From NCBI GenBank assembly GCA_977020255.1, contig CDROCS010004653.1, positions 62,001 to 126,000 of the forward strand: a stretch of DNA of 64,000 bases, in the 5' to 3' direction. Positions 39,485 through 58,497 of this stretch are shown here, one piece after another; the stretch's first letter is position 1, and each line of letters starts with the position of its first letter. A model generated the notes under the pieces. That model did no database searches and was not told where the DNA came from. It was given only the letters and a program-made list of their open reading frames with translations. Both the position numbers and the translations under genes were made by a program. Origin of the DNA: Obrimoposthia wandeli (lineage: Eukaryota).

Positions 39485-39549
39485 GTTATTATTCCTATTA
39501 TTAGCCGTTCTTACTTGTTTATGTATTGTTTAAATACATGCTTTATCTA

Positions 39550-40308: not shown

Positions 40309-40375
40309 GACTTTTCCTCAGCATCTCTACCTATATTTATCGCAGTTTCTCTCGACATGTTAATCGTCATGTTAC

Positions 40376-43327
40376 TCATAGCGTCTGCCTTTGTGTTTGA
40401 GGATCGTAAAATGGCAGCGCAACAACTTTGGCATTCACCATTACACCACCTGTAGATCTAATCGCTATTTCACTGCCAACTTCAGCTTTGTGCAGTTGTA
40501 CATAAGCCATACCTACCGGCTTGCCTAAAGTAGGCGAATAGTTACAAGAAGTTATTCTTCCGGTCATTTGATCACCTTCAATAATCAAGTGGCTCTCTAA
40601 TGGAATAGGTGCGTCTAGATCATCAACCACAAAGCCAACTAAGGCTCGTAATTGGCCGATAGTATTCAGCTCTTTTATAACGCGCTGACCAACAAAGAAA
40701 GGTTTCTTAGTTGATACCGCCCAACCCATTTGTACTTCTTGTGGAGTCGACATGGCATCGGTATCTTGGCCGATAATGATATGGCCTTTTTCTAAACGCA
40801 GCACACGCTGTGCCTCGATACCAAATGGTTTGATACCTTGCTCAACACCTGCTTCTATTAAGGCATCCCACAGTGCTTCACCACAATGCTGTGGTACATG
40901 GATTTCAAAACCGAGTTCGCCCACAAAACCGACACGAATTAAGCGTGCTTCAACACCAGCAACATGTCCTTCACGCACACCCATATAAGGGAACGCTTCA
41001 CTGCTAAGGTCAACATCGCTACATACTTTTTCCAGTACTTCGCGCGCTTTTGGCCCGGCGATATTTACGGCGCACCAAGCAGAAGTGACATTGGCGATAT
41101 CAACATCTAAGCACCACTGAGCATTCCATTTGAGCATGCTTTGATAAACGCGATCTACACCGCCAGTGGTGGCGGTTACATAAAATAATTGATCGTGAAA
41201 ACGACAGCTCACACCATCGTCAATTACTACACCGGCCTCGTTAGTCATCAATGCATAACGTGCACGGCCAATGGGTTGCTTTAAAAAGCCGAAGGTGTAA
41301 ATACGGTTCATTAATTCAGCTGCATCTGGGCCGCGAATTTCAATGCCACCTAAGGTAGATACATCCACTAAACCCACATTATTACGCACGTTATCAACTT
41401 CTGCATTGATACACGCATCACGCTGCTCGGTTGTGCCATAGTAAGCTGGGCGATACCAAGCACCTGCTTGTAGCATTTGTGCACCGGCCTCTAAATGTCG
41501 CTGATGCATGCTAGTAAAGCGCTCAGGATAAAAACTGCGACCTGCTAAATGCCCTAAACGCTCTGGAGCAAAAGGTGGGCGCGCGGTGGTAACACCTGTT
41601 TGTGCAACGCTTCTGCCGGTCGCCTCTGCAACAATACGCGCAGTAGCTAATGCAGAATGACGCCCTTGTGATGGCCCCATACCACATGTGGAATAGCGCT
41701 TAACTAGCTGTATGTGTTCATAACCATCGCGGGTAGCGTTAACGATATCGGCTATTTGTAAATCTTCATCAAAATCGACAAACTCTTTGCCTTTTGGATG
41801 TGGAAAAATAGGCCAGCTATAATTGGGGCTAGCAGCACTATCATCAGCTAACGGTGCAGGCTCTGCTATGGCGCTAATATGATCGTTATCTTGTGCGAGT
41901 CGATTGCAGGCTAATACAGCCGTACGATAACCATCACCACACACCGCATCTGTTGACCAATTACCATTCACTGAACCAGCTATTTGCAGCGCTTTAGGGA
42001 GTTTTTCTAAGGTAAATAGTGCCGTTTCATCATCGTAGCTTAACTGCCCACCCGCTTGGCAAACCAGCTGATACGTTGGCGTGTAACCTATTGCCATACA
42101 TAGCAAATCACAATCAACAAACTCACCGCTATCTGCACATTTACCACGCCCAATTTGCTTGCGTAGCTCAACTCCCGCCAAATGCTTTTTATCGCTGTTA
42201 GCTTTTGCGGCATACACTGCATGGTTGTTGTATATAGGGACTCCGCGGCCAGCTAGTTCTTGCACAATATCGCTTTGTACTGGCGCATCACGTAGCTCTG
42301 CAACGGCGGCTACTTCAATACCGGCATCTAGCATTTCAAGTGCAACTGCGTATCCGTGATCATTACCCGTCACAACGACAGCGCGTTTGCCTGGGCGCAC
42401 CCCGTAAAGCCTAATCAAGCGTGCTATCGCACTAGACATCATCACGCCGGGTAGGTCATTGTTATGAAAAACAGCTTGCTGCTCTAATGAACCCACCGCC
42501 ATAATCAATTCTTTAGCGCGTACTTTGTACATCCTTGCGCCTTGAATTATCGGCAGCCAGTTATCAGCAAAGTAGCCGTTACATAATGCATCGAGCTTTA
42601 CTTCAATATTATCATTCGCTTCGATATCAGCGATCATAGCCAGGCGTAATGCCTGTGCATTATGACCTTGTGCATCAATTCTGTCGTAGCTTAAGCTGCC
42701 ACCTAATACTGGGTTTTCATCCACCAGTAAAACCTTAGCACCTTGCTCTGCCGCTTGAATCGCAGCCGTCATTCCCGCAGGGCCTGCACCAACGACTACC
42801 AAATCATAAAAGCGGTAAGCTTTGTCGTAGTAACCCGGCTTAAAGTTTTCATCAAGCACGCCTAAACCGGCTTTTTTACGAATCAATGGTGCCCATTTTT
42901 CCCAAGCGCCTTTTGGTTTATAAAAAGCTTTGTAGTAAAAACCGACCGGCATAAAACCGCCCACTTTTTCAATATGACGCCCTAAATCTTTTTCTAAGCT
43001 ACCGCTATAATTTTGCCCATCAACATTCATGCCCTGCACTAGCGGGGTTTTATCGGCTAGCACGTTAGGATCACTTGGCAGCTGTACTAAACTGTTAGCA
43101 TCTTGCCCTGCCATGGTTAATACACCACGTGGGCGATGATATTTAAAAGAGCGGCTAATCAGCCACTGGCCACTGGCTGCCAAGGCACTGGCGATAGAAT
43201 CCCCAGCAAAGCCTTGAAATTGCTTATTGGCAAAAGAGAAATTCAATGTTTGGCTGCGATCTATCAGTAAACCGCCACTGGCCAATCTATTGTTTGCGCC
43301 GTTTGTACTATTATGAGTTATAGCCAT
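40376..43327 (-). CDS. soxA: Sarcosine oxidase alpha/MgdC-like subunit (FAD/NAD domain plus GcvT-like folate domain)
   Basis: SRSFKYHRPRG, VVGAGPAG, KRYSTCGMGPSQG, DVSTLGGIE, RLEKGH. Confidence 0.9.
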   Translation of the reverse strand: MAITHNSTNGANNRLASGGLLIDRSQTLNFSFANKQFQGFAGDSIASALAASGQWLISRSFKYHRPRGVLTMAGQDANSLVQLPSDPNVLADKTPLVQGMNVDGQNYSGSLEKDLGRHIEKVGGFMPVGFYYKAFYKPKGAWEKWAPLIRKKAGLGVLDENFKPGYYDKAYRFYDLVVVGAGPAGMTAAIQAAEQGAKVLLVDENPVLGGSLSYDRIDAQGHNAQALRLAMIADIEANDNIEVKLDALCNGYFADNWLPIIQGARMYKVRAKELIMAVGSLEQQAVFHNNDLPGVMMSSAIARLIRLYGVRPGKRAVVVTGNDHGYAVALEMLDAGIEVAAVAELRDAPVQSDIVQELAGRGVPIYNNHAVYAAKANSDKKHLAGVELRKQIGRGKCADSGEFVDCDLLCMAIGYTPTYQLVCQAGGQLSYDDETALFTLEKLPKALQIAGSVNGNWSTDAVCGDGYRTAVLACNRLAQDNDHISAIAEPAPLADDSAASPNYSWPIFPHPKGKEFVDFDEDLQIADIVNATRDGYEHIQLVKRYSTCGMGPSQGRHSALATARIVAEATGRSVAQTGVTTARPPFAPERLGHLAGRSFYPERFTSMHQRHLEAGAQMLQAGAWYRPAYYGTTEQRDACINAEVDNVRNNVGLVDVSTLGGIEIRGPDAAELMNRIYTFGFLKQPIGRARYALMTNEAGVVIDDGVSCRFHDQLFYVTATTGGVDRVYQSMLKWNAQWCLDVDIANVTSAWCAVNIAGPKAREVLEKVCSDVDLSSEAFPYMGVREGHVAGVEARLIRVGFVGELGFEIHVPQHCGEALWDALIEAGVEQGIKPFGIEAQRVLRLEKGHIIIGQDTDAMSTPQEVQMGWAVSTKKPFFVGQRVIKELNTIGQLRALVGFVVDDLDAPIPLESHLIIEGDQMTGRITSCNYSPTLGKPVGMAYVQLHKAEVGSEIAIRSTGGVMVNAKVVALPFYDPQTQRQTL

Positions 43328-43623
43328 TAGCTTTCTCCTGCGTCAACGGTGAAATCAACGCGCTTGTTAAATATTTTACTGGCGGGGAAAGTTTCAATAA
43401 TTTCATCCGTGATGGTATTACGACGTGCCATAAACCAATAAGAAGTCGCGCTGTGGCACCACCACTCACACACTTCACCTGCGATGTTGTCATGGAAAAA
43501 CACATGTTCAACCCACTCGCGTGTATCGCACTTTTGCGGATCTGGCATGGGGTGATACTCACCGCCATAAATGAATTCTGATATGTTGCGCAGCCCATTC
43601 AACGGGCAATTAATTTGTTTCAT
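43327..43623 (-). CDS. soxD: Sarcosine oxidase delta/MgdB-like subunit
   Basis: INCPLNGLRNISEFIYGGE, EWWCHSATSYWF, RNTITDEI. Confidence 0.9.
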   Translation of the reverse strand: MKQINCPLNGLRNISEFIYGGEYHPMPDPQKCDTREWVEHVFFHDNIAGEVCEWWCHSATSYWFMARRNTITDEIIETFPASKIFNKRVDFTVDAGES

Positions 43624-43644
43624 TGCAGTTTCTCGCTGTAGAGG

Positions 43645-44889
43645 TTAATGGCTAGCGGCAGTAGCACCGGCTTCGTTGATTTGATCAAAGCGGTAAAAAC
43701 GCTCTAACTCAAACGGCTTAATCAAAGCAGGTGGCTTACCGGTGGCGACTAACTCAGCCATCGACTTACCACTGATCGGCGTAGCTTTGAACCCCCAAGT
43801 CCCCCAACCAGCATCTAAATAGTAATTTTCAACTGGGCTTAGACCCATAATTGGGCTGTAATCCGGTGTCATATCTGTGACCCCTGCCCACTGGCGCATC
43901 AAACGCGCTTGCGCTAAAAACGGGAATAGTTCTAACGTTGCAGCGGCTAATGACTCTTTCATATCTAGAGTAGAGCGGGTGTTATAAAGCGGATATGGAT
44001 CAGAGCCTCCACCGATAACAAACTCACCACGTGAGGTTTGGTGTACATAAACATGCACATGCGGCGAGCTAACATGGGGCGTTAACATCGGCTTATAAGG
44101 CTGGGTCACCATCGCCTGTAGCGGAAAGCTGTGTATCGGTAATTTAATACCGGCCATTTTCGCCACCACCGAACTAGTACCAGCCACCGCCTGCACTGCA
44201 CAACCACAAGAAATAGTGCCGCGCGAGGTTTTAATCCCCTTCAGCTTACCGTTCTCAACTAACACATCTTGCACTTCTGTGAGCTGGTGCAATTCAACAC
44301 CACGATCACAAGCCCCTTTCATATAACCCCAAGCGACTGCATCGTGGCGCGCTGTCGCACCATCTGCATGCCAAAGCCCACCCATAATTGGATAGCGCCC
44401 ATCTTCAGGCATATTTAAATTTGGTACTAACTCACGAATCGTTTGACGATCCACCAGCTCTGAGCGTACACCCAAGTGCTGATTCACTTCCGCGCGCCAA
44501 CGAAAACTGCGCACCGCTGCATCGCTGTGAGCTAAAGTCAATTGACCGCGGTTTTCCATCATCACGTTGTAACCAAACTCGTTACTCAAGTTCTGATAAA
44601 GCTCCACTGATTCGCGATAAAAACTAACACCTTGATCAGTTAAATAGTTAGATCGGATAACCGCGGTATTACGCGCCGTATTTCCGCCGCCCAAATAACC
44701 TTTATCTAATACTGCAACATTGGTAATACCGTGGTATTTAGCGAGGTAATAAGCAATAGCAGCTCCATGGCCACCCGCGCCGATAATCACTACATCATAG
44801 TGTTTTTTCAGTTCAGTATTACTGGGGGTAAAGTGCTGCTGAGCCGGATAATCTTTGCTCAAACCATATTTCAATAAGCCGAAAGGCAT
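43645..44889 (-). CDS. soxB: Sarcosine oxidase beta-like FAD subunit
   Basis: YDVVIIGAGGHG, AKYHGITNVAVL, GGGNTARNTAVIRSNY, ARHDAVAWGY, GWGTWGFKATP. Confidence 0.88.
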   Translation of the reverse strand: MPFGLLKYGLSKDYPAQQHFTPSNTELKKHYDVVIIGAGGHGAAIAYYLAKYHGITNVAVLDKGYLGGGNTARNTAVIRSNYLTDQGVSFYRESVELYQNLSNEFGYNVMMENRGQLTLAHSDAAVRSFRWRAEVNQHLGVRSELVDRQTIRELVPNLNMPEDGRYPIMGGLWHADGATARHDAVAWGYMKGACDRGVELHQLTEVQDVLVENGKLKGIKTSRGTISCGCAVQAVAGTSSVVAKMAGIKLPIHSFPLQAMVTQPYKPMLTPHVSSPHVHVYVHQTSRGEFVIGGGSDPYPLYNTRSTLDMKESLAAATLELFPFLAQARLMRQWAGVTDMTPDYSPIMGLSPVENYYLDAGWGTWGFKATPISGKSMAELVATGKPPALIKPFELERFYRFDQINEAGATAASH

Positions 44890-45438: not shown

Positions 45439-47103
45439 CTATAGAATTATTTTTCCTATTTGCTCTATGTATTGATGAATCATCGCCATAAATTTACCCG
45501 CGTCTGCACCATTAATCACACGGTGATCAAATGACAAACACAGCGGCAGTTTTTTGCGTGGTTTAAAGCTTTCACCATCCCAAACAGGCCTGATTTCAGC
45601 ACTAGCGACGCCTAAAATTGCGACTTCTGGGCCATTCACTATCGGTGTAAATCCAGTGCCACCCATGGGTCCTAAGCTAGAGACCGTAAAGCAACCTCCT
45701 GTCATTGCATCGACACCCAACTTTCTGTTTTTTGCTTTCACTGCCAAATCGTTAATCTGTAAGCTAAGCTCACTGATTGATAATGTATCGGCATTGCGTA
45801 TAACAGGAACTAATAGCCCAGCAGGAGTGTCGACTGCCACCCCTATATTTACATATTTTTTATAAATGACTTGCTGCCCATTAGAATCTAACGAACTATT
45901 AAACTTAGGGTATTTACGTAAAGCTTTGGCAACGATCATCACTATAAATGGCAGAATTGTCGGCTTTCTTTCTAGCTTAAATTCCGCTGGATCAATACTG
46001 CTGCGAAAAGCTTCTAGTTCAGTAATATCAACTTCATCGTGCAAGGTGACGTGCGGAATGTTCAGCCAACAGCGTGTCATGTGAGCAGCCGTCGCTTTAG
46101 CGATCGCCGACATATCATGCCTTTCTATTTCACCAAACTGACTAAAATCTATACTTGGTAGAGGAGTAATAGCCTGAGAAGTACTAAAATTGACCTCTTT
46201 TTTTGCATGGCCGTTGAGCATTTGACGTTTCACAAAGGATTTTACATCTTCTTTTAAAACCCGGCCACGATAGGCGCTACCGACAACAAGAGACAAATCA
46301 ACTGCCATTTCTCTTGCCAGTTTACGCACCGCAGGGCCCGCCGATGAGCGTCGCTCGAAAATCACCGCATCATTTTCAGTCGCTTCACTCACTTGCGTAT
46401 CACTTACTTCACTTTGGCTATCGGCTGGTAATACTATCGGCTTTATGGCAGAGCCTTGGTTCCCAGTAACGAGCTGATACTCATCAACAGCAGCTGTTTG
46501 TGGCTCACTGATAACACTAACTACCGCTAATTGATTGCCTTGCGAGACGCTGTCACCAATGCCAACTAACCATTTTTTTAGTATTCCGTTGCTAGTTGTC
46601 ACTATATCCATAGCGGCTTTGTCTGATTCTACTACCAAGATTGCCGTACCTTCTACTAATTCATCACCAACCGCCACTGAATACTCAACCACCTCACCCT
46701 CGCCTTCGGCATCTAAACTGATAATAACGTCCCTAGTAATTACAGGACTGCTATTTGTCGGCACCAATTTATTGTCTGCATAGCTAATATCCGTGGTAAC
46801 TTCGACATCCGCTTGCTGATCTGATAGTAATGTGCCGATTGGCGACTGCGATTTCGGCTCTTGCTCTGATTTTGCTGCAGACACTGATGCTAACTCAGCC
46901 TCTTGGGATATATTATCTCCAATATCAACAAGCCACTTTGTCACCACCCCACTCATTGTCGCGGGAATTTCCATCGTCGCCTTGTCGGATTCAACTACCA
47001 ACAGAGAGTCACCTTCGTTAACGGTATCGCCGATCGCTACACAATATTCAACAACCTCTCCTTCACCTTCGGCCTCTAGCTTAATTATTTTTTCACTGTT
47101 CAT
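45439..47103 (-). CDS. aceF: Dihydrolipoyllysine acetyltransferase E2 with two lipoyl domains
   Basis: ESDKATME and ESDKAAMD lipoyl motifs, AGPAVRKLARE E1/E3-binding domain, SFDHRVINGA catalytic motif. Confidence 0.93.
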   Translation of the reverse strand: MNSEKIIKLEAEGEGEVVEYCVAIGDTVNEGDSLLVVESDKATMEIPATMSGVVTKWLVDIGDNISQEAELASVSAAKSEQEPKSQSPIGTLLSDQQADVEVTTDISYADNKLVPTNSSPVITRDVIISLDAEGEGEVVEYSVAVGDELVEGTAILVVESDKAAMDIVTTSNGILKKWLVGIGDSVSQGNQLAVVSVISEPQTAAVDEYQLVTGNQGSAIKPIVLPADSQSEVSDTQVSEATENDAVIFERRSSAGPAVRKLAREMAVDLSLVVGSAYRGRVLKEDVKSFVKRQMLNGHAKKEVNFSTSQAITPLPSIDFSQFGEIERHDMSAIAKATAAHMTRCWLNIPHVTLHDEVDITELEAFRSSIDPAEFKLERKPTILPFIVMIVAKALRKYPKFNSSLDSNGQQVIYKKYVNIGVAVDTPAGLLVPVIRNADTLSISELSLQINDLAVKAKNRKLGVDAMTGGCFTVSSLGPMGGTGFTPIVNGPEVAILGVASAEIRPVWDGESFKPRKKLPLCLSFDHRVINGADAGKFMAMIHQYIEQIGKIIL

Positions 47104-47152
47104 CGATACCTCCTAACGCTGCTTCATACCAAGCAACGTCATCCATCAAATT

Positions 47153-47189
47153 AAAAAAAGCCGCTGTGTATACATCCAAACCAGCGACT
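47153..47189 (-). terminator. Terminator-like hairpin between aceE and aceF
   Basis: Minus strand agtcgctg-N-cagcggct followed by a T7 tract. Confidence 0.55.
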
Positions 47190-47307
47190 AAAAGGGTTGA
47201 TTGGCTATAGCTCTTGGGGAGAACTTCGGCGAAAAACACGCCATAAAACCCCAACAAACCCCTGTGACTCTGATCATTTATTTATTAACCATGATTATCC
47301 GTTTTTA

Positions 47308-49989
47308 TTAAAACAACATAGGATCTGGCTTTTGCGTGGGTATCTTAAGCTTTGCTCTCGCCTGTTCTAAAACAGCATCACAGACTTCTCCTTGGCGATA
47401 TAAACCTGTTAAAGCAGACCAGGCGATATAACGGGCATCTACTTCGAAATGATCACGTAATGTATCTCTACTTTCACTAAGCCCAAAGCCATCTGTACCT
47501 AAGCACATCAAATCAACAGGGAACCATCCGCTAATCGCTTGAGGTAATGACTTCAAATAATCGCTCACCGCGACAAAAGCCCCACTTTCATTCGCCAATA
47601 ATTTCTGAATATAATTTTGTTGTGGATACTGTGGATTAAGCAAATTTTCACGATCAACAGCTTGCGCTTGGCGTAACAGCTGGTTATAACTCGTCACGCT
47701 CCAAATGTCCGTACTACAGCCAAAGCCCTGCAAAATCTGCGCTGCATCTAATACTTCCTGCATCAAGCTGCCGCTACCTAATAAATGTACTTTCATTCCT
47801 TCGTCACTATTCTTAGAGAACCGATACATTCCCTGTAAAATACCACTTTCAGTCTCTTCATCACTTGGCATTGCAGGCATCAAATAGTTTTGATTGTAGA
47901 GCGTGATGTAATAAAAAATCTTCTCGTCTTTTTCATACATCCTCTCGATGCCATCGCGAATAATAACCGCCAACTCATAGGCAAACGCAGGATCATAGCT
48001 ATACATATTTGGCACAGTAGCGGCAACGGCATGTGAGTGACCATCTTGATGCTGTAAACCTTCACCATTAAGAGTGGTCCGTCCTGCCGTTGCACCCAGT
48101 AAAAAACCTTTCGCTAAATTATCAGCACAAGCCCAAATCATGTCGCCAACACGTTGAAAACCGAAAATCGAATAGAATATATAAAAAGGTATGGTCGGCA
48201 CGCCGTAATTAGCATAAGCCGTACCTGCAGCCATGAATGACGCCATCGCTCCTGTTTCACAAATACCCTCTTGTAATAACTGGCCATCAATTTTTTCTTT
48301 ATATGGCAGCAAGCTACTTGAATCCACCGGGTTATATTTTTGTCCGACACTAGAATAAATACCGAACTGGTTAAACAGTGATTCCATTCCAAAAGTGCGT
48401 GCTTCATCCGGGACAATAGGCACGATGAACTTACCAATTTGCTTATCTTTAAGCATATTCGAGAGCATCCGCACAAAAGCCATTGTCGTTGATTGTTCGC
48501 GCTTGGTGCCATCTAATGCCTGTTTGTACAAACTGAGCAACGGCGCTTTAATTTTCGGATAGTCTACTTGTCGGGTCGGTAGATAACCCCCTAATTCGCC
48601 ACGCCTAGCATGTAAGTATTTTAGCAGTGGGCTGTCATCAGCCGGCTTATAGAGCTTCGCTTGTGTTAATTCTTCATCACTTAATGGGATACCGAAGCGC
48701 CGCCCGATTTCAATGCGCTCAGCCGCGTTAAACTGCTTCTTCTGATGACTGGTATTTTGTCCTTCCGCAGAGGAACCTAAGCCATCGCCTTTGACTGTTT
48801 TCATTAATATAACGGTTGGCTTTCCAGTTGTTTTTAGTGCGGCATCAAACGCTGCGAATATTTTTTGCTTGTCTTGGCCACCGCGACGTATACAACGTAT
48901 TTGCTCATCGGATAAGGTTTGCATTAACTCGGCTAGTTTTGGATCATCCTCAGTCCAATGGCTCCTAACCGTCGGTCCATCCGAAACCGTATAAAATTGA
49001 TAATCACCATCAACTGCACGATCCATTCGCGCTTGCAGAACACCCTCGGTATCACGAGACATCAACTCATCCCACTCACTTCCCCAAATAACTTTAATAA
49101 CGTTCCAACCGGCGCCGCGATAACTACTTTCTAACTCTTGTATTATCTTTCCGTTACCCCGTACTGGCCCATCTAAACGTTGCAAATTACAATTGATAAC
49201 CATAACTAAGTTATCTAGATTATCTCTGGTCGCCATATTAACGGTGCCTAACACTTCAGGCTCATCTGACTCACCATCTCCAATAAAGCACCAAATCTTT
49301 CCACCGTCTTTCTGCTTCAATCCTCTGTTTTCTAGGTACTTCATAAAACGAGCTTGGTAGATCGCAGCTGGCGTTGAAAGCCCCATTGACGCTGTAGGTC
49401 CCTGCCAAAAACTAGGCATTCTCCGTGGGTGGGGATAAGAACTTAACCCTCCGCCGGGTTGCAATTCACGTCGAAAGTTTGCCAGTTGAGTTTCATTTAA
49501 ACGCCCCTCAACAAAAGCTCTAGCATACAAACCTGGTGCTGCATGCGCTTGCACAAACAACTGATCACCGCCATAGCTATCTGATTTATTCTTAAATATA
49601 TGATTAAAACCTACCTCAAGCATCGTTGCCGCCGATTGGTACGTGGCGATATGCCCGCCGACACCCGTCCCTTGATCGTTAGCGTTTAATACCAGCGCCA
49701 TCGCATTCCAGCGAATAATATTTTCTATTTTCGTCTCTAGTTCAGGATTATTTGGGTAAGCGCTTTGCTGGCTAATCGAAATCGTATTGCGATACGGTGT
49801 ATTTAGCGTTGCTTGAGCTAGATTAATTTTTTTACTCAGCAAATAGTTTTGTAAATTACGCAGTACATCCAGAGCGCGATTATCCCCCTGCTGATTAATG
49901 ATATCTTGCAGTGCTTCTGTCCACTCTGAATTTTCTAGTACTATATCTGCATCAATAACAGCATCTATGTCAGTATTTGTATCTTTCAT
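47308..49989 (-). CDS. aceE: Homodimeric 2-oxoacid dehydrogenase E1 (AceE/MdeB type)
   Basis: IRWNAMALV, GGHIATY, SSYPHP, GDGESDEPE...NCNLQRLDGPVRGNGKI TPP motif, GEGLQHQDGHS; start put at ATG 49989 (GGA RBS), ORF track extends to 50136. Confidence 0.93.
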   Translation of the reverse strand: MKDTNTDIDAVIDADIVLENSEWTEALQDIINQQGDNRALDVLRNLQNYLLSKKINLAQATLNTPYRNTISISQQSAYPNNPELETKIENIIRWNAMALVLNANDQGTGVGGHIATYQSAATMLEVGFNHIFKNKSDSYGGDQLFVQAHAAPGLYARAFVEGRLNETQLANFRRELQPGGGLSSYPHPRRMPSFWQGPTASMGLSTPAAIYQARFMKYLENRGLKQKDGGKIWCFIGDGESDEPEVLGTVNMATRDNLDNLVMVINCNLQRLDGPVRGNGKIIQELESSYRGAGWNVIKVIWGSEWDELMSRDTEGVLQARMDRAVDGDYQFYTVSDGPTVRSHWTEDDPKLAELMQTLSDEQIRCIRRGGQDKQKIFAAFDAALKTTGKPTVILMKTVKGDGLGSSAEGQNTSHQKKQFNAAERIEIGRRFGIPLSDEELTQAKLYKPADDSPLLKYLHARRGELGGYLPTRQVDYPKIKAPLLSLYKQALDGTKREQSTTMAFVRMLSNMLKDKQIGKFIVPIVPDEARTFGMESLFNQFGIYSSVGQKYNPVDSSSLLPYKEKIDGQLLQEGICETGAMASFMAAGTAYANYGVPTIPFYIFYSIFGFQRVGDMIWACADNLAKGFLLGATAGRTTLNGEGLQHQDGHSHAVAATVPNMYSYDPAFAYELAVIIRDGIERMYEKDEKIFYYITLYNQNYLMPAMPSDEETESGILQGMYRFSKNSDEGMKVHLLGSGSLMQEVLDAAQILQGFGCSTDIWSVTSYNQLLRQAQAVDRENLLNPQYPQQNYIQKLLANESGAFVAVSDYLKSLPQAISGWFPVDLMCLGTDGFGLSESRDTLRDHFEVDARYIAWSALTGLYRQGEVCDAVLEQARAKLKIPTQKPDPMLF

Positions 49990-50335
49990 TACCATTTCCA
50001 AAAATATTAATAAATTTGGCAAGCCTAAAACTTGCCAAAAACAGCTAAAAGAACTGCCTTGAACTTGTAAAGCCCTAGCACAGGGCGATATGTAGTAAAG
50101 AATCAGGCAGTGAAAGTGTTTATCCAGACATTGCATGCAACAACATAGAATTAACGAACAGAATCATATCCAGACTTTCTAGTATTTGATCAACATCAAA
50201 AACAAGAACTCACTGCATAACCCTGCATACCCGTCACGTTAATTCCTTGATGCCGCATCATTTACTCTTAACCTCCTAAACATAGCGAAGTTATCTAGAG
50301 TGCGAGGATGTACTCAGTCTTTTGAACCATATAAC

Positions 50336-50488
50336 CATAGCTGTCCAGTTAAAAAGTGTAAGCCCTCTAACTCGTTGATTTGTGATTTTCTAGCATAGTA
50401 AATTGGATTTATTCAGCCGAAATACACTTGTCGTTAACGCAAAATCAACGAGTTAAAGAACAACAAAAATTAAACCGGACACTAATGC
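50336..50488 (+). mobile_element. 153-bp MITE, copy C, with 9-bp target-site duplication
   Basis: catagctgtccagttaa...ttaaaccggacactaatg flanked by ccatataac at 50327-50335 and 50489-50497. Confidence 0.88.
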
Positions 50489-50700
50489 CATATAACAACT
50501 ATATTTTGTGGATCACACATTACTGAGAAGAACAAACTTCTCCTAGCTGCCAGTACTTTTTAAAGCGCTAATACAACTTTAAACGACTTAATCCTCATAG
50601 CCGCAAACAGCCATTATTTGCTTGGAATAATTCACTGCAGCCGAACATTTATAGCATTTAAACAAGTATCTCCTCATCCTATTAAAAGAATGCGCGGTCC

Positions 50701-51243
50701 TTACTTGTTTATTACTAAATCCCCTTTAACCGGTGTGCTTTGCATAATAGTCATCGCATTCGGACTTTGTTTTAATGCCGTTTGGCGTAACATTTCAAAT
50801 TGTTCGTCAGTGCCATCACCCGTCACTTCGATACAATAATTCAGCTCAGTAAATGGGACTGAGGCATTTGCATCTATCTCCAAAAAGCCGGCTAAGTCGA
50901 GTTCACCTTTGACAGTAACTTGCAATGATTCCAACTGAATTTCAAGAATGGATGCTCCAACAGCGAATCCGACCAAAATACAAGCACCCACTCCTGAAAG
51001 TAAGTATTCCTGTGGATTAGGGGCATGGTTACAACCTAACAACTGTCTTGGCTCGTCTATTTCCCAGCTAAAGTCGCGACTGACCGTTTGTTGACCAATA
51101 CTCATCGGCAGCGTGGTAACTTTAGAGCGAGTGCCACTTTGCCAATCGAGCTGCACTCCATATTTTGCGATACCTTGTGCTGCATCTTCGTTGATCTCAT
51201 TGACAAATTCGCTCAGTCCAGCGACAGAAATTGCATTGCGCAT
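50701..51243 (-). CDS. OsmC/Ohr-family protein (single conserved Cys)
   Basis: DEPRQLLG, APNPQEYLLSGVGAC, V-GELDLAGFL, C-terminal QSPN; ATG 51243 with GGAG RBS. Confidence 0.85.
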   Translation of the reverse strand: MRNAISVAGLSEFVNEINEDAAQGIAKYGVQLDWQSGTRSKVTTLPMSIGQQTVSRDFSWEIDEPRQLLGCNHAPNPQEYLLSGVGACILVGFAVGASILEIQLESLQVTVKGELDLAGFLEIDANASVPFTELNYCIEVTGDGTDEQFEMLRQTALKQSPNAMTIMQSTPVKGDLVINK

Positions 51244-51410
51244 TGTATTCTCCAATTATTTTTTGGTAGATTAACTTCTACCATTTTGTGTTAATTTTTT
51301 TATCTTAAATACGCTATTTAAAGCCCTGTAAACCCATGTTTGCTGAGGTTCATTACCCTTTATTAGGCGGTAAATTAATGCTTTATAGCTTGCGTACATA
51401 TAATGTGCAT

Positions 51411-52715
51411 TTAGGACAAGTGAGCTAAGGCTTGCTCGAAGTCAGCGACTAAATCCTCTGCATCCTCAATACCGACAGATAAACGAATACAACCTGGATT
51501 TATTCCCATATTTGAACGCTGCTTAGCCGTAAAACCTGCGTGTGAGGTGTTATAAGGTAAGCTGATAAGTGATTCAACGCCTCCAAGGCTCGTTGCTTGT
51601 TTAGGAATTTTTAAGTTATCTAACAATCTAAGTGCAGCTTCATCTCCTCCTTTTACCTCAAGGGCAATCATGCCGCCGCCATTATTAAGCACCTCCTTAG
51701 CTAGCGAGTTATCTGGGTGACTCGCCAATAAAGGGTAATAAACAAAATTAATCAGTGGATGAGTTTCTAAATATTCAGCTAATTGCAGAGCACTTTGCTG
51801 GTGAGCTGCCATGCGAATAGCTAATGTTTTTAGCCCTCTCTCAAACAGAAAACAGGCATGCGGATCTAAACTCCCACCGTAGGTTAAAAGTCGTGGCCAA
51901 ATCATATCGACTAATTTTCTGCTACCCATTACCGCACCAGCAATAACATCTGAGTGACCATTAAGGTATTTTGAGGCTGAATGAATAACAACATCCGCAC
52001 CCAAGGCAACAATACGACAACTTATCGGCGTCAAAAAAGTACCATCGATCACTAGACGTAATTGGTGGCGCTTAGCAATGCTTGATAAGCGTTTAATATC
52101 GACCAGTTTTAATAGCGGATTGGTTAACGCTTCGAAATATAAGATCTGAGTATTAGGCTGTATCGCAGCTTCTATAGCATCATAATCACGTGGATCAACA
52201 TAACTGACACTCATATTAAAAGTCGGTAACTCTTGATTAAAAAGGTTATACGTCCCCCCATATAGTTCATTAGACGCAACGATATGTGCCCCTTTGTCTA
52301 CTAACGACAGAACAGTCGCTGTAATGGCAGCCATACCCGAGCTAAAAACTAGGGCTGATTCCACCCCTTCTAGCGCCGCCAATTTAGTTTGTAACGCCCA
52401 CTGGTTAGGGTTGCCATAACGTGTATAAATAAATCTATCGCGAGCGTAACCCTCTTCTACCGAACGGTATTGATCCTCTCCTAGAATAAACGTCGTCGTC
52501 TGGTAGATTGGCGTACCTACAGCCCCCGTAGCTCCATCGTCAATGGTGCCCGCATGAACACCCTTGGTTGAAAACCCAACCTCTGACCAGTTTGTATGCG
52601 ATACACTAGGCCCGGCGTTACGCTCTCGCTGTAAATTCGAAGTCCAGTAAGCATTAGCAGGCAAAGGACTTATTCCAAGAGCGTCCCCTTTAATATTTTT
52701 ATTCTTAATTGTCAT
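51411..52715 (-). CDS. Cys/Met metabolism PLP-dependent gamma-lyase (cystathionine/methionine gamma-lyase family)
   Basis: TPIYQTTTF, YTRYGNP, LAALEG, SSGMAA, SASKYLNGHSD, SLGGVESL, RLSVGIED; ATG 52715 with GAGG RBS. Confidence 0.9.
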   Translation of the reverse strand: MTIKNKNIKGDALGISPLPANAYWTSNLQRERNAGPSVSHTNWSEVGFSTKGVHAGTIDDGATGAVGTPIYQTTTFILGEDQYRSVEEGYARDRFIYTRYGNPNQWALQTKLAALEGVESALVFSSGMAAITATVLSLVDKGAHIVASNELYGGTYNLFNQELPTFNMSVSYVDPRDYDAIEAAIQPNTQILYFEALTNPLLKLVDIKRLSSIAKRHQLRLVIDGTFLTPISCRIVALGADVVIHSASKYLNGHSDVIAGAVMGSRKLVDMIWPRLLTYGGSLDPHACFLFERGLKTLAIRMAAHQQSALQLAEYLETHPLINFVYYPLLASHPDNSLAKEVLNNGGGMIALEVKGGDEAALRLLDNLKIPKQATSLGGVESLISLPYNTSHAGFTAKQRSNMGINPGCIRLSVGIEDAEDLVADFEQALAHLS

Positions 52716-52751
52716 GTATTGCGCCTCATTTATAGTGTCTGGGATATACAA

Positions 52752-52767
52752 TACAAATTTTGTGCCA
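52752..52767 (-). promoter_or_regulatory. Sigma54-like -24/-12 promoter for the lyase gene
   Basis: Minus strand TGGCAC-AAAAT-TTGTA versus consensus TGGCAC-N5-TTGCW (one mismatch at -12), 36 bp upstream of the ATG. Confidence 0.5.
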
Positions 52768-52786
52768 CAATACATTTAGTCTTATA

Positions 52787-52799
52787 AATCAATTTCTTA
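52787..52799 (+). promoter_or_regulatory. IHF-consensus site
   Basis: AATCAA-TTTC-TTA matches WATCAANNNNTTR; lies between the putative promoter and the activator boxes. Confidence 0.5.
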
Positions 52800-52829
52800 T
52801 ACACGATAGCAGAGGTTTCTTTAAACGGC

Positions 52830-52847
52830 TGTCATAAAAAAATTACA
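52830..52847. promoter_or_regulatory. TyrR/PhhR-like box 1
   Basis: TGTCAT-AAAAAA-ATTACA, an 18-bp TGT-N12-ACA box. Confidence 0.65.
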
Positions 52848-52910
52848 CTCCATTTTTTGCCCAAGCTATATATCACGGTACTTTAGCTAAGGTTGCTGCT
52901 CTTGCACTTT

Positions 52911-52947
52911 TGTCACATTTAAATGACAATGTAATAAAAAAATTACA
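52911..52947. promoter_or_regulatory. Tandem TyrR/PhhR-like boxes 2 and 3 separated by 1 bp
   Basis: TGTCACATTTAAATGACA (52911-52928) and TGTAATAAAAAAATTACA (52930-52947), ending 9 bp before the regulator ATG. Confidence 0.7.
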
Positions 52948-52956
52948 GGCTTAATC

Positions 52957-54492
52957 ATGCGCTTTGATATTCGCTCTATAGATAGAATTGGAATCACCCA
53001 AGAGATCCTTAAAGTATTCACTCATCAGAATTGGAATTTAGTGCGCGTTGAAATGTACCTGCACCATACTTTTGTACAGCTAGACCAAAAGGCTGAATTA
53101 GCTGAGCTAATCATTGCCTTGCAAGGTATTGAAGGCGTAATAGAAGTGGTCGAAATTGATTTACTACCAGATGAAAGACGTACTTTGCATCTAGATGCTG
53201 TTCTATCAAAACTACAAGATCCAATATTAGATATTGATAGCACTGGACGAATACTATTAGCCAATAGCGCAGCAACTGTATTACTTGGAAAAACAGAAGC
53301 TGATATACAGGGCGTTTCACTGACCGATTTCATTGATTGCCCATTAGAATCGTTACTTTGTAAGCACGAGAATAGTATTGATATTACCTGCGCGGGGCAG
53401 TCATTCCTTGCCCAGTCAACACCTTTTTATTCACATAACGGTGCACGAGAATCAATTTCTGGTGCAGTCATTTTACTACAGAGCCTAAGTCGTTTAGGTC
53501 AACAAATTTCTGCAGTAAACTACAGCGGTAATGAAACTGATCAATCTTTCATTGGCGTTTGCGAAACAACTCAAACATTACTGAGTACCACAAAACGCTT
53601 CGCCAACTTAGATATGCCCGTCCTCATTCAAGGCGAGACTGGTACGGGCAAAGAACTAGTTGCCCATATCCTCCACGATAGTAGCCTGCGAGCAGGAAAA
53701 CCTTTCATGGCTATTAACTGTGCAGCAGTTCCTGAAAACCTACTCGAAAGCGAACTTTTTGGATACGCGCCCGGAGCATTCTCAAGCGCTAGCAGAAGTG
53801 GGAAACCAGGCTTATTTGAATTAGCTGATGGCGGCTCCATTTTATTGGATGAAATAGGAGAAATGTCCGCTTATTTGCAGGCAAAACTGCTGCGGTTTTT
53901 ACAAGACTTCAGTTTTAGACGCATCGGTGGTGAAAAGGAGATTACGGTCAATGTGCGTATTATTAGTGCGACCCATCGAGATTTACAAACCATGATAGAG
54001 AAAAAAATATTCCGTGAAGATCTATATTACCGTCTCAATGTGTTGAATTTACAAGTGCCTGCATTACGCCAACGCAGAGCTGATATACCAGCACTGACAA
54101 AGCACTTCATCACGCGCGCAGCGGAACAAACAAGACGTCACACTCCAGCGTTATCAAGCTGTGTTTTAGATAAACTTATGTCACACTACTGGCCCGGTAA
54201 CATCAGAGAACTACAGAACGTACTATTTAGAGCCGTCGTCATGTCAGATGGCGAAATGCTAGAACTGCAAGATATCTGTACTGAAATCGATAGTCCAGCC
54301 CAGCCTCTCGCCCAAAAAACAGCCCAACAAAAAGACTCTGTTGAAGACTGGCAAAGCGCGGTTAGTGAATTTGAAAAGGAGTTACTTAGTGTGCTTTACC
54401 CACTCTACCCTTCTTCAAGAAAGCTAGGCCAACGCTTAAAAGTTTCGCACAATACTATTGCCTTAAAACTGAAAAAGTATGGGTTGACTTGA
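52957..54492 (+). CDS. TyrR/PhhR/GcsR-family regulator (ACT-PAS-AAA+-HTH)
   Basis: DRIGITQEIL ACT start, GETGTGKE, ESELFGYAPGAFSSA, LLDEIGE, REDLYYRLNV, WPGNIRELQN, C-terminal YPSSRKLGQRLKVSHNTIALKLKKYG. Confidence 0.9.
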   Translation: MRFDIRSIDRIGITQEILKVFTHQNWNLVRVEMYLHHTFVQLDQKAELAELIIALQGIEGVIEVVEIDLLPDERRTLHLDAVLSKLQDPILDIDSTGRILLANSAATVLLGKTEADIQGVSLTDFIDCPLESLLCKHENSIDITCAGQSFLAQSTPFYSHNGARESISGAVILLQSLSRLGQQISAVNYSGNETDQSFIGVCETTQTLLSTTKRFANLDMPVLIQGETGTGKELVAHILHDSSLRAGKPFMAINCAAVPENLLESELFGYAPGAFSSASRSGKPGLFELADGGSILLDEIGEMSAYLQAKLLRFLQDFSFRRIGGEKEITVNVRIISATHRDLQTMIEKKIFREDLYYRLNVLNLQVPALRQRRADIPALTKHFITRAAEQTRRHTPALSSCVLDKLMSHYWPGNIRELQNVLFRAVVMSDGEMLELQDICTEIDSPAQPLAQKTAQQKDSVEDWQSAVSEFEKELLSVLYPLYPSSRKLGQRLKVSHNTIALKLKKYGLT

Positions 54493-54794: not shown

Positions 54795-55556
54795 TTAAAT
54801 TGCCAAATACTTATGCATCAATTCTTTGTCATCCAATACTTCTTGCGCTACCCCATCGAACACCACTTCTCCGGTGTCGATAATGATGGCGCGATCAGCG
54901 AGCCTTAAAGCGGCAATGGCATTTTGTTCGACAATGATTGTGGTTATGCCCAGCTCTTTAATTTCATTCAGGATGTTTTCTATCTCCTTAACAATTATCG
55001 GCGCCAGCCCTTCGTATGGCTCATCTAACAATAATAATTTAATATCACGTGCTAGTGCGCGTGCCACTGCTAACATCTGTTGTTCGCCCCCTGATAAGGT
55101 TGCTCCATCTTGTAAACGCCGCTCTCCTAAACGAGGGAAATGTTTGTAGATCCGTTCTAGTGACCAGCCTATCGGCTCTTCTATTTGCGCCAGCTGGATA
55201 TTCTCTTCTACGGTTAATCCCGGAATGATCCAGCGATCTTCAGGGACTAATGCCACTCCGTTTTTCGCGGCCTCGTGTGATTTCATCAGGTGTAGCGGTT
55301 TATGGTCGAGCCAAATTTCGCCAGAGTTGACCTGTGGGCTACTGGCTCGGGCGATGGAGCGTAAAATAGACGTTTTACCGGCACCGTTCCTCCCCAAAAG
55401 CGCGAGAATTTCTCCCTCTCTAATATCAAAACTGACATTCTGCACTACGAAGCTTTCTCCGTAGTAGCTGTTCATTTCCCACACTGAAAAGAAAGCGGGT
55501 GCACCACCTTTGTTGGTGACAGGCTTTTTTACCGGAGCTATTGGGCTACTGCTCAT
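54795..55556 (-). CDS. LivF-like ABC ATP-binding protein
   Basis: GRNGAGKT, LSGGEQQMLAVARAL, LDEPYEGLAP, VEQN. Confidence 0.92.
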   Translation of the reverse strand: MSSSPIAPVKKPVTNKGGAPAFFSVWEMNSYYGESFVVQNVSFDIREGEILALLGRNGAGKTSILRSIARASSPQVNSGEIWLDHKPLHLMKSHEAAKNGVALVPEDRWIIPGLTVEENIQLAQIEEPIGWSLERIYKHFPRLGERRLQDGATLSGGEQQMLAVARALARDIKLLLLDEPYEGLAPIIVKEIENILNEIKELGITTIIVEQNAIAALRLADRAIIIDTGEVVFDGVAQEVLDDKELMHKYLAI

Positions 55557-56317
55557 ATCACTGCTCCTCCCAGATACGCTTCTTTGACAATTTCACTCTC
55601 GCGAATTTCCTGCGGTGTTCCCTCGGCAATAATAGTGCCTTGTGCGAGTACCGAGACTCTGTCTGCAAGGCTAAACACCACATTCATATCGTGTTCGATA
55701 ATAACTTTAGTCATGCCACTGGCCTTGATTTTCTGTAGTATTTCTATGGTTTGATTGGTATCAGCTCTGGCCATCCCCGCGGTTGGCTCATCCAATAATA
55801 ATAGTTTGGGTTTTTGCACTAGACACATGGCCAGCTCTAATCTGCGCTTATTTCCGCGAGACATTGCACCCGCGCGATCAGATATTTGCTCCATGAGGTG
55901 CATCTCTTCTATGATACTCATCGCCTGTTCTTCAATATCTTTACGCTGATTAATTGCCTTAAATGGATTAAAGGTAAACTCTCCATCTAAGCTTGCCAGT
56001 GCAGGAATCATGATATTTTGTAAGATGGTTAGATCTTCAAATATTTGTGGCGTCTGAAAAACACGTGATATCCCCTGCTGGCTTATCTGATGCGGTAATT
56101 GGCCGGTAATGTTATCACCATTAAATTTGACAGTGCCTGCATCGGGAGTCAGTTGACCGATGCAAACATTAAGCATGGTTGATTTCCCAGCCCCATTGGG
56201 GCCAATGATAGCGTGCACGGTCCCCTCTTCAATGGTTAAATTCAAATCATTTAGTGCCTTTAAACCGCCAAATGTTTTCAGCACACCAGTGACTTCTAAC
56301 AATGCGTTATTCGCCAT
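55553..56317 (-). CDS. LivG-like ABC ATP-binding protein
   Basis: [36 protein letters not shown]. Confidence 0.92.
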
Positions 56318-57455
56318 GCTCTGCTCCTGATTTTAACTTATCGACTGATTTATCAGCGCTCAACATGTGTTTAAGCTTCCTGTAACCAAGTTGCACTCCC
56401 TGCATTACGCCACCGGGCAAAAAAGCCACCACAAACATAAACAATAAACCTAAGGTCATGTGCCATCCCTCTCCAACAAATAGCGATGAAATACTAACTA
56501 AAGCATTTTCTAGCCAGTTTGGTAGCCAGGCATATAAAGCGTGCAAATCTACTTGATTGACTGCCGAGAAGATATTTTCAAAATACTTGATAATAACCAC
56601 TCCCAGTAGTGGACCAAACAAAGTGCCGACTCCGCCAAGAATTGTCATCAAGATTACTTCCCCTGATGCCGTCCACTGCATGCGTTCGGCTCCCGCCAAT
56701 GGATCAGTTGCTGCTAGAAGTCCACCTGCTAGCCCGGCGTACATACCGGAAATAACGAAAGCAGTTAAGAGGTAAGGTTTAGTGTTAAAACCTAAATATC
56801 GCATGCGGTTTTGGTTAGACTTAATCGCCTTGAGCTTTAAGCCAAAGGGAGAGTTAAATATTTTGAGCGAGACGTAAAATACTGCAATCATAATCAACGC
56901 AGAAATATAAAAGCCAGAATAACCGCTGGTTTCAATCCCAAATAGAGTTGTAGAAGGCAAACCTTCACCCGCTTCACTAAACAGCCTATCAATGATACGT
57001 GGATCACTTTTAGCTAATTGCAAACCGGTTTCCCCATTGGTGATTGGGGTCAGAACAGAATAGGCTAGGTTGTAGCACATCTGAGCAAAAGCTAAGGTTA
57101 AAATCGAAAAGTAAATACCCGATCTGCGCAGCGCTACATACCCCATCGCCACCGCAAAAATGCCTGACATCACTACACTGAGTATAATCGCCGGTATAAT
57201 ATTCATCGACAGTAACTTAAACGACCAAACCGCCGTATAAGACCCTATCCCTAGAAAAGCTGCGTGACCAAAAGATAAATAGCCGGTTAAACCGAATAAG
57301 ATATTATAGCCGATGGCGAAAACACCAAAGATAACAAACTTCTGCAGTATATCGGGGTACGCGGCGCCAAACGGTATCATCCACAATGGCATGGTTAATA
57401 CCACTGTCGAAAATAACAGCATGATAAGCCAATTCTTTTTCATTAATTTATTCAT
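56307..57455 (-). CDS. LivM-like branched-chain amino acid ABC permease
   Basis: [39 protein letters not shown]. Confidence 0.92.
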
Positions 57456-57456
57456 A

Positions 57457-58497
57457 TTAATCTTCGAAAACCCCCTTAACGCCCATCAGACCTCGTGGCC
57501 TAACTAACAAGACAACAACAGCGACTAAGTAAATTATGATTTGATCGATACCGGGCAGAATTTCTTTTACTTCATTCATCGCGGCAAAAGATTGCAGAAT
57601 GCCAAGCATAAATCCAGCGGCGACGGCACCGGGCAATGAACCCATCCCCCCCACTACCACTACTACGAAGGTTAGTACCAAAAAGTCCATCCCCAAGTGG
57701 AAATCTGGTGGCACTATTGGCGCATACATCACCCCGGCAACACCCGCCACTACAGCGGACAAACTAAAAACAATAGTGAAACGCCGCTCGATGTTAATAC
57801 CTAACATGCCAACCATTTCACGGTTTTGAATACCTGCCCTGACCACCATGCCAAACGTGGTAAATTTGAGAAACGCAAATACAGCCCCGATAACACTTAA
57901 AGAAAAACCTAGATAAATAAGCCGCCACCAAGGGTAAATGACATTTTCCCCCAGCCCGATGTAGCGTCCAATATCAGCACTACCAGATACAGCTTCAGGC
58001 GCCGAAGTGGGAATAGGGTTAGCACCAAAGAAATGACGAATAATTTCTTGCAGGACGATCGCTAAGCCGAAGGTGAAAAGAATTTGAGAAGCGTGATCAC
58101 GCTTGTAAAAGTATTGAATAAAGCCACGCTCTAAAACCCAGCCAACTAATAGCATTACCGGAATGGCAAAAAGAATAGATAGCGGTACCGAAAAGTCTAT
58201 GATGGTAGCGCCGGTATCTCCCCACCAAATTTCCAAATAAGGCATATCCTTATAAGCATCGAAGAAGGTGATACTTTCGTCTTTTACCGATTTAGAAATA
58301 GTGAGTATTTTGTTGAATGTAACCGCACAAAACGCCCCAAGCATAAATAATGCGCCGTGGGCAAAGTTGACGATTCCTAAAGTTCCAAATGCTAAGGTTA
58401 GACCTAAAGCAATCAACGCGTATGCGCCGCCTTTATCTAAACCGTTTAAAAGCTGTATGAGTATTGCATCCATAAGATAAAACAACATCGCTATCAA
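57457..58497 (-). CDS. LivH-like branched-chain amino acid ABC permease
   Basis: [37 protein letters not shown]; start uncertain (58497, 58488 or 58473). Confidence 0.9.

Follow-up and report, generated by a model that had tools for sequence, protein, structure and literature searches.

A TyrR-type regulator, a Cys/Met-family lyase, a one-cysteine OsmC-like protein and an AceE-type dehydrogenase: a candidate amino acid catabolic module of marine bacteria

Described Relatives and Gene Content of the Locus

The closest described relative of the locus reported here is the mde system of Pseudomonas putida (mdeR:mdeA-mdeB; in gene orders, a colon sets the regulator apart from the genes beside it), in which MdeB is an AceE-like E1 cited as specific for 2-oxobutyrate (bioRxiv 10.1101/2022.07.13.499613). 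The window analyzed, 64,000 nucleotides from Obrimoposthia wandeli (assembly GCA_977020255.1, contig CDROCS010004653.1, positions 62,001 to 126,000 of the forward strand), contains five genes predicted to encode a TyrR/PhhR-like regulator, a pyridoxal phosphate (PLP)-dependent lyase, an OsmC-like protein, and the E1 and E2 components of a 2-oxoacid dehydrogenase. Like the mde genes, these set a PLP gamma-family lyase beside a homodimeric E1 that would dispose of a keto acid. In contrast to the mde system, the window has neither mdeR nor mdeA, its lyase is not a methionine gamma-lyase (MGL), its E1 fails the MdeB model TIGR03186, and the module adds an E2 of its own as well as an obligate OsmC-like partner and has a sigma-54/TyrR-type activator where mde has an Lrp-type regulator. 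The differences from mdeAB that the first-pass annotation had listed (own E2, OsmC, and another regulator family) were all confirmed at the gene level. We propose that the five genes probably form a conserved catabolic module of two transcription units, in which the lyase would yield 2-oxobutyrate and E1/E2 would convert it to propionyl-CoA. The genes are as follows.

45439-47103, minus strand: E2 dihydrolipoyl acyltransferase, 554 aa, assigned by domain and family models
47308-49989, minus strand: AceE-type homodimeric 2-oxoacid dehydrogenase E1, 893 aa
50701-51243, minus strand: one-cysteine OsmC-like gene, 180 aa, PF02566
51411-52715, minus strand: PLP-dependent Cys/Met-family lyase, 434 aa, PF01053 (E = 2e-130)
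52957-54492, plus strand, divergent from the lyase: TyrR/PhhR-like regulator with ACT-PAS-AAA+-HTH_50 architecture, assigned by Pfam and NCBIfam

The order and strands of the genes agreed with those given earlier, including a regulator divergent from the lyase. The start of E1 was corrected to the ATG at 49989, which gives 893 aa and matches its relatives (the listed open reading frame, 47308-50136, was overlong), that of OsmC to the ATG at 51243, and that of the lyase to the ATG at 52715, which gives the length of its homologues, since an upstream ATG at 52775 runs into the promoter. The OsmC-E1 spacer is ~710 bp long and contains a miniature inverted-repeat transposable element (MITE); therefore, the four minus-strand genes do not form a tight operon. 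The closest relative at the DNA level was ~75% identical. All five genes were found again in Osedax-symbiont and Amphritea loci with wholly different flanks, and this recurrence amid unrelated neighbors indicates that the arrangement is not due to chance.

Lyase and Its OsmC-Like Partner

The lyase matched PF01053 over its full length (435 bits, model positions 1-380 of 381) and conserved the PLP-binding lysine (SxSK), which bears out its earlier assignment to the Cys/Met family of PLP enzymes. It scored under every NCBIfam family cut-off, the top model being that of MGL (TIGR01328, 387 bits against 549.7), and its nearest solved structures were MGLs as well (~329 bits). In an alignment to the Citrobacter freundii MGL (6egr), the gamma-family residues Tyr58, Arg60, Tyr113, Lys210, Ser339, and Arg374 were kept. 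The residues that we take to be specific for MGL in the C. freundii and P. putida enzymes are Cys115/116 of the YGC motif and the Lys239-Asp240 pair; the lyase has YGG and Leu/Thr-Tyr, respectively, at these sites. An identity as MGL was ruled out by the model score and these residues, and on this evidence the lyase represents a Cys/Met PLP subfamily of its own. Its N-terminal extension of ~45 aa is conserved, with Trp24, Arg30, and Arg32 invariant; speculatively, the two arginines would fit a substrate with a distal anionic group.

Homologues with 65-91% identity occurred in Nitrincolaceae, Osedax symbionts, Colwellia, Aliikangiella, Flocculibacter, and many Rhodobacterales, and the lyase-OsmC pair was 65-90% identical between Alpha- and Gammaproteobacteria. 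Such high identity across classes suggests one conserved function together with lateral spread. More distant lyase homologues (51-52% identity; L005 7951-12469 and L007 9704-12348) were followed by a tandem double OsmC domain, one of them in a context of ThiF-rhodanese and small open reading frames, a CoA-transferase, an acyl-CoA ligase, and a dehydrogenase, and the other beside unscanned open reading frames of the size of nonribosomal peptide synthetases (NRPS) or polyketide synthases.

An OsmC-like gene lay directly 3' of the lyase in 13/13 distinct subfamily loci (56-91% identity). These loci belong to Gammaproteobacteria, Alphaproteobacteria, and Flavobacteriia, and include Nitrincolaceae, Colwellia, Aliikangiella, Sulfitobacter, Sedimentimonas, a Roseobacter metagenome-assembled genome (MAG), a Sphingopyxis MAG, Psychroserpens, and Lacinutrix; a profile search of genome contigs with the lyase alignment gave at least seven subfamily loci. 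The protein shares with the Ohr/OsmC thiol peroxidases the OsmC fold, a cysteine at the peroxidatic position (Cys88, aligned with Cys59 of Escherichia coli OsmC, and the single invariant cysteine in all orthologues), the glutamate of the NPxE motif, which is likewise kept in the orthologues, and a lipoyl-bearing E2 encoded nearby. It differs from them in having serine for the resolving cysteine (Ser155 at the position of E. coli Cys125, and serine in all orthologues), in an N-terminal extension of ~40 aa, and in its constant PLP-lyase partner. A pair of cysteines ~60 residues apart defines the Ohr, OsmC, and Ohr-like peroxidases (PMC5384416). Because the second of these is replaced by serine, the protein, although of OsmC fold, stands outside the three peroxidase subfamilies. 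On the model of OsmC-related (seleno)proteins it reached only 62 bits (cut-off, 95), and its closest solved structure was the uncharacterized 2opl; TusA fusions were found in an OsmC cluster that is structurally near to it.

The literature that was searched contained no described function for the lyase-OsmC pair. Under physiological conditions, Ohr/OsmC proteins are reduced by lipoylated proteins (PMC5384416), and osmC genes occur within allicin/thiosulfinate tolerance clusters, where the role of OsmC has never been demonstrated (PMC7119367). Our guess is that the OsmC-like protein employs its single cysteine to capture or reduce a reactive sulfur leaving group, with dihydrolipoyl groups as a possible source of electrons. 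This guess is based on the obligatory pairing, the lone redox-type cysteine, the nearby lipoyl E2, the thiosulfinate clusters, the TusA fusions, and the ThiF-rhodanese locus.

Linkage to 2-Oxoacid Dehydrogenases

A 2-oxoacid dehydrogenase E1 adjoined the lyase-OsmC pair in 10/13 loci, and these E1s were of three unrelated types, as follows.

Marine AceE-like E1 with E2: the window, the Osedax-symbiont loci L081/L089/L170, and the loci L084, L088, and L090
Short E1 of 785-795 aa: Colwellia (together with E2-E3 and a Na+/alanine symporter), Aliikangiella (together with E2), and Sulfitobacter and Sedimentimonas (E1 alone)
Positions of the short E1 genes: L083 11952-14333, L085 11907-14291, L172 11848-14205, and L001 11909-14296
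Canonical-like AceE-E2-E3 (lipoyl-Lpd) in the same operon as the pair: the Roseobacter MAG

In L084, L088, and L090, an ATP-binding cassette (ABC) importer with an SBP_bac_3 component was located between OsmC and E1. The short E1 was ~24% identical to AceE, scored 210 bits on the aceE model, and represents an uncharacterized homodimeric-type family. The spacing from lyase to E1 was tight in Aliikangiella, Colwellia, and Sulfitobacter. The operon of Aliikangiella reads TyrR-like:lyase-OsmC-E1-E2-prpB-prpC-prpD; its OsmC and E1 genes overlap by 14 nt, and prpB, prpC, and prpD all score above their equivalog cut-offs. The methylcitrate cycle consumes propionyl-CoA. The presence of prpBCD in this operon therefore suggests that the keto acid is most likely 2-oxobutyrate and that the lyase reaction would be a gamma-elimination. 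A literature search for a 2-oxobutyrate dehydrogenase in connection with methylcitrate found nothing relevant.

The synteny survey established that a lyase of this subfamily and a 2-oxoacid dehydrogenase are co-conserved across phyla. The first-pass annotation had proposed a dedicated route from the lyase to an acyl-CoA under one TyrR-family regulator; the route gained support from the linkage and from prpBCD, but a single TyrR control of all four genes was not supported.

Two Amphritea loci (L087 13410-15176 and L088 13579-15327) contained a homologue of the acetolactate synthase III large subunit (ilvI-like) after E2, which scored 1003 bits against a cut-off of 951 and lacked an accompanying small-subunit gene. 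Acetolactate synthase is another enzyme that uses 2-oxobutyrate. In Psychroserpens (L004 8848-11789), a flavin monooxygenase resembling FMO/ArsO preceded the pair, together with an AsnC-type regulator and no E1 nearby; the monooxygenase may point to heteroatom oxygenation of the substrate.

Regulator and Lyase Promoter

The regulator resembles TyrR of E. coli and PhhR of Pseudomonas in its ACT-PAS-AAA+-HTH architecture, in palindromic boxes of the type TGTAAT-N6-ATTACA, and, as for PhhR, in a putative sigma-54 promoter. It differs from them in scoring under the cut-off of the TyrR model NF008085 (427 bits against 576), in a sigma-54 loop that reads GAFSSA (window and L081) or GAFSGA (L084 and L088) instead of the canonical GAFTGA, and in its location beside a Cys/Met-family lyase rather than aromatic genes. 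Orthologues were divergent from the lyase in L081, L084, L088, L170, and L172. The spacer between the regulator and the lyase contains the following elements.

52752-52767, minus strand: sigma-54-type -24/-12 element TGGCAC-N5-TTGTA, before the lyase
52830-52847, 52911-52928, and 52930-52947, no strand assigned: three TyrR-type boxes (TGTMAT-N6-ATKACA)

The boxes were the only matches to TGTMAT-N6-ATKACA in the 64 kb, and the boxes (in register), their spacing, and the -24/-12 element were conserved in five loci. The spacing TTGG-N8/9-TTTGC was kept in L081, L084, L088, and L090; the relatives retain the -24 GG and the -12 TTGC, whereas the window reads TTGT, with T in place of their C at -12. 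Because the boxes and the sigma-54 element were found only before the lyase, predicted TyrR-type control is well supported for lyase-OsmC only. The earlier claim of TyrR-family control of the whole module is accordingly supported for its first two genes, which have three boxes and a -24/-12 element, but not for E1-E2, which has a conserved leader of its own.

E1 and E2 Enzymes and Their Kinship with the mde Operon

The module resembles AceE-AceF(-Lpd) of E. coli in an E1 that passes the aceE model TIGR00759 (1215 bits against a cut-off of 860) and keeps 18/20 of the active-site residues of E. coli AceE, the changes being S109T and V192A, and in an E2 made up of two lipoyl domains (DKA motifs, K41 and K162), an E3-binding domain, and a DHRVING-bearing catalytic domain. 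This E2 scored 516 bits on TIGR01348, under the cut-off of 552. With catalytic motifs intact, both enzymes look functional. In contrast to the E. coli pyruvate dehydrogenase (PDH), the E1 is only 50% identical to AceE and falls in a separate clade with universal V192A, pdhR and lpdA are absent, and the neighbors in its clade are amino-acid lyases and Lrp/TyrR-type regulators. Genes for lpdA, E3, pdhR, mdeR, mdeA, and prpCD were not found in the 64-kb window. The missing lpdA was not used as a sign of a special complex, since many aceEF loci in the census also lacked it.

In a tree of 53 E1s, the window E1 fell in a marine clade that was split with 100/100 support from E. coli and the aceE-aceF-lpdA loci, which settles the phylogenetic comparison proposed in the first-pass annotation in favor of a position outside canonical, E. 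coli-type AceE. The tested members of the marine clade all scored 1130-1250 bits on the aceE model, compared with 1466 for a canonical AceE (~250 bits lower), and 49/49 of them had alanine at E. coli Val192 (Ala200 in the window E1). The window E1 reached 1090 bits against a cut-off of 1408 on the MdeB model TIGR03186 ('AKGDH_not_PDH'), all 18 other clade members tested failed likewise, and its identification as MdeB was rejected on this score. Because of the tree separation and the TIGR03186 failure, the E1 is, judged from its sequence, neither canonical AceE nor MdeB, but a lineage persistently tied to amino-acid regulators and gamma-lyases. A search of the clade from a GC-rich member gave only marine Cellvibrionales-type organisms and no Pseudomonas reference.

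The contexts within the window's own 13-row clade (100/100) were TyrR:lyase-OsmC(-ABC)-E1-E2, mdeR:mdeA-E1(-E2), Lrp:E1-E2, and GntR:E1, and the sister clade was mostly Lrp:E1-E2, with several mdeA insertions and orphan E1s. In five loci, the neighbor of the module was a genuine MGL gene with an Lrp-type MdeR; such pairs adjoined it in Amphritea, L084, L090, and Sulfitobacter. In Amphritea and loci related to it, the module lies between mdeR:mdeA and E1-E2; this confirms the kinship with mdeAB that had been suggested earlier. The neighboring mdeA-type lyases tested passed the MGL model (594 bits in A. opalescens L087 and 605 in Sulfitobacter L085, against 550), and A. opalescens has the layout mdeR:mdeA-E1-E2 with an E1 73% identical to that of the window. 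The module is thus evolutionarily interleaved with mde genes in its relatives; from mde it differs in the subfamily of its lyase, in the OsmC that constantly accompanies it, in the lineage of its E1, which comes with an E2 of its own, and in its sigma-54/TyrR-type activator.

Marine AceE-like E1s usually occurred in a divergent arrangement, Lrp/AsnC:E1-E2 (e.g., L096 9332-14046 and L099 9362-14004). In the census (L086-L168), MGL genes were inserted between the regulator and E1 several separate times in the marine clade.

Proposed Pathway

In the first transcription unit, the TyrR/PhhR-like activator would bind the three predicted boxes, drive the sigma-54 promoter, and express the lyase and OsmC. 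The lyase would perform an alpha,gamma-elimination on an imported amino acid to give ammonia, 2-oxobutyrate, and a leaving group; its substrate would most probably be a homocysteine- or methionine-type compound with an oxidized or otherwise reactive gamma group. That this substrate is a sulfur amino acid we infer. The OsmC cysteine may trap or reduce this leaving group, which would be a sulfenic acid or thiosulfinate if the substrate is a sulfoxide, and a persulfide if it is a disulfide. In the second unit, the AceE-like E1 and the two-lipoyl E2, with the E3 of the cell, would convert 2-oxobutyrate to propionyl-CoA. The gamma-elimination, the 2-oxobutyrate product, and the activity of E1-E2 on 2-oxobutyrate are predictions from residues and gene context.

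As a two-gene unit, lyase-OsmC is sharply conserved and has spread among marine bacteria of different phyla, and it is a probable route by which marine heterotrophs, including relatives of Osedax-type symbionts, consume an abundant amino acid, most likely an organosulfur compound. If its substrate were identified, the marine sulfur and carbon cycle would gain a step, and the one-cysteine OsmC branch its first physiological role. The analysis also yielded a marine AceE-like clade with Val192->Ala that is tied to Lrp-type regulators and MGLs, the short E1 family, and a series of stages in the assembly of mde-type operons.

Several observations weigh against a coupled lyase-dehydrogenase module. 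In the window, OsmC is split from E1 by ~710 bp, the MITE, and a hairpin with a T-run. Neither a TyrR box nor a sigma-54 element was found before E1. The E1 leader (200-300 nt) is conserved whatever lies upstream, namely OsmC, an ABC ATPase, or a divergent Lrp-type regulator. Compared with the paralogous E1 of an Osedax symbiont (E1b, see below) or with Lrp-linked E1s, the E1 has no fixed active-site change, and an altered substrate pocket of its own was rejected for this reason. Members of the E1 clade occur widely among Nitrincolaceae (three Neptunomonas species, Amphritea, Neptuniibacter, and Marinobacterium), the second cysteine by which the peroxidase subfamilies are defined is missing from the OsmC-like protein, and in 3/13 loci (Psychroserpens, Lacinutrix, and the Sphingopyxis MAG) the pair had no E1 within 10 kb.

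The E1 leader has the following coordinates.

50015-50039, minus strand: 11-bp hairpin followed by a T-rich run, ending 25 nt before the E1 start codon
49990-50330: E1 leader of the window
E1 leaders of relatives: L081 12066-12325, L086 8741-9000, and L084 14515-14774

The shared blocks of the leaders include GGTGCTAAATTATTT and CACAAGACTGATG. Two consecutive hairpins stand just upstream of the ribosome-binding site, the second often with a T-run, and hairpins of different sequence occupy the same position in L081/L170, in L086, and in L084/L090/L124. The leader may be an attenuator; Rfam returned no known RNA in it. Public runs covering the window had flat, DNA-like depth and no expression signal. 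From its leader and spacer, E1-E2 is predicted to be at least partly an independent unit.

Alternative Explanations

The strongest alternative is that E1-E2 is the ordinary principal PDH of these bacteria (a marine AceE type, normally Lrp-regulated), that lyase-OsmC is merely placed beside it, and that 2-oxobutyrate is converted as a side activity. We regard this as possible, if on the less likely side. The wide spread of the E1 clade in Nitrincolaceae means that E1-E2 may simply be their main PDH, and inheritance of the clade in this family looks vertical, with a gradual fall in identity and one match per named genome. The sister clade in which Lrp:E1-E2 prevails comprises Halieaceae, Spongiibacteraceae, Porticoccaceae, and Cycloclasticus, the E1 has its own conserved leader, and V192A is common to the whole marine clade rather than confined to lyase-linked E1s.

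The assembly of the Osedax symbiont Rs2 (IMG 3300001092) points in the same direction. One contig carries TyrR:lyase-OsmC-E1a-E2, with an E1a 87% identical to the window E1, and a second carries a GntR-type regulator beside a second AceE-type E1 (E1b, 73%) with no adjacent E2. No second E2 was seen in the Rs2 assembly, so that the sole E2 seen sits in the lyase cluster. E1b stands next to a divergent GntR/FCD regulator, and has no E2 beside it, both in Rs2 (L171 48-3577) and in a related metagenome contig (L091 9056-12652); the regulator was considered as PdhR and rejected, since it did not match PdhR. The nearest relatives of E1b have the MdeB-like layout mdeR:mdeA-E1 without E2. Therefore, E1a-E2 could be the main complex and E1b an accessory.

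Against an ordinary principal PDH, the clade is separated from canonical AceE by the 100/100 split and by ~250 bits on the aceE model, and its association with amino-acid regulators and lyases is persistent. Several clade members are orphan E1s, and an orphan E1 cannot make up a whole PDH. Codon bias was not raised in E1 or E2, whose effective numbers of codons (52 and 56, respectively) were mid-to-low for the window. In Colwellia, Aliikangiella, and Roseobacter, moreover, the main PDH is certainly different, and the pair brings its own E1 and E2. Between the two identities, a dedicated or secondary complex is on balance probable, and a co-opted main PDH has a lesser but appreciable chance. 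Whether the complex is dedicated or co-opted, its functional coupling with the lyase, as read from gene context, stands.

A second alternative, which we consider unlikely, is that lyase-OsmC mainly detoxifies a toxic oxidized sulfur or selenium amino acid (e.g., methionine sulfoxide, S-alkylcysteine sulfoxides, homocystine, or selenomethionine), and that the dehydrogenase chiefly supplies dihydrolipoyl reductant to OsmC. The single conserved cysteine at the peroxidatic position with its retained glutamate, the reduction of Ohr/OsmC by lipoyl proteins (PMC5384416), the osmC genes of thiosulfinate tolerance clusters (PMC7119367), the presence of E1 and E2 without E3 in most loci, and the FMO/ArsO-like flavoprotein before the pair in Psychroserpens would all fit it. 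However, operons of the module contain amino-acid importers (the SBP_bac_3 ABC transporter and the Na+/alanine symporter), the prpBCD link favors carbon use, and even in the allicin clusters OsmC has never been demonstrated to play a role.

A bolder version of the catabolic proposal joins the two functions in a redox-balanced machine, and we hold it to be rather improbable. Here the lyase would split an S-oxidized or disulfide-type derivative of homocysteine or methionine into 2-oxobutyrate and a reactive sulfur species (a sulfenic acid or a persulfide), oxidation of the keto acid to propionyl-CoA by E1-E2 would leave the lipoyl arms of E2 in reduced form, and OsmC would draw on these arms, rather than E3 and NAD+ doing so, to turn the leaving group into a harmless thiol. 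If true, OsmC-family proteins and the E2s of 2-oxoacid dehydrogenases would each gain a new physiological role, and the scheme would explain why most clusters have no E3.

We judge it highly improbable that the lyase serves in biosynthesis as a transsulfuration or sulfhydrylation enzyme, that OsmC is a general stress gene, and that their neighborhood is meaningless: automatic names (cystathionine beta-lyase/gamma-synthase) and the biosynthetic-looking clusters of the distant homologues (51-52%; ThiF-rhodanese or NRPS) speak for it, but the 13/13 pairing, the 10/13 dehydrogenase linkage with three E1 types, the context of prpBCD, mdeA, and importers, the scores of the lyase under the cut-offs of all biosynthetic equivalog models, and the predicted sigma-54/TyrR-type inducible control speak against it.

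Flanking Genes and the MITE

The module is flanked in the window by a sarcosine-oxidase-like cluster, which encodes two beta subunits, and by a Liv/Urt-type ABC transporter (38144-44889 and 54795-60250). Both were considered as parts of the module and rejected, since these flanks were not kept in L081/L170; the cluster and the transporter are probably unrelated to it.

The element between OsmC and E1 has the following coordinates.

50330-50490 (approximate ends), no strand assigned: MITE

Assembler depth over the MITE (window 50252-50645) was 326-1833, compared with ~20 on the flanking genes, and contigs broke at the MITE with many different loose ends (50371-50488). The depth excess and the varied loose ends suggest that the MITE is present in roughly tens of copies in the sample.

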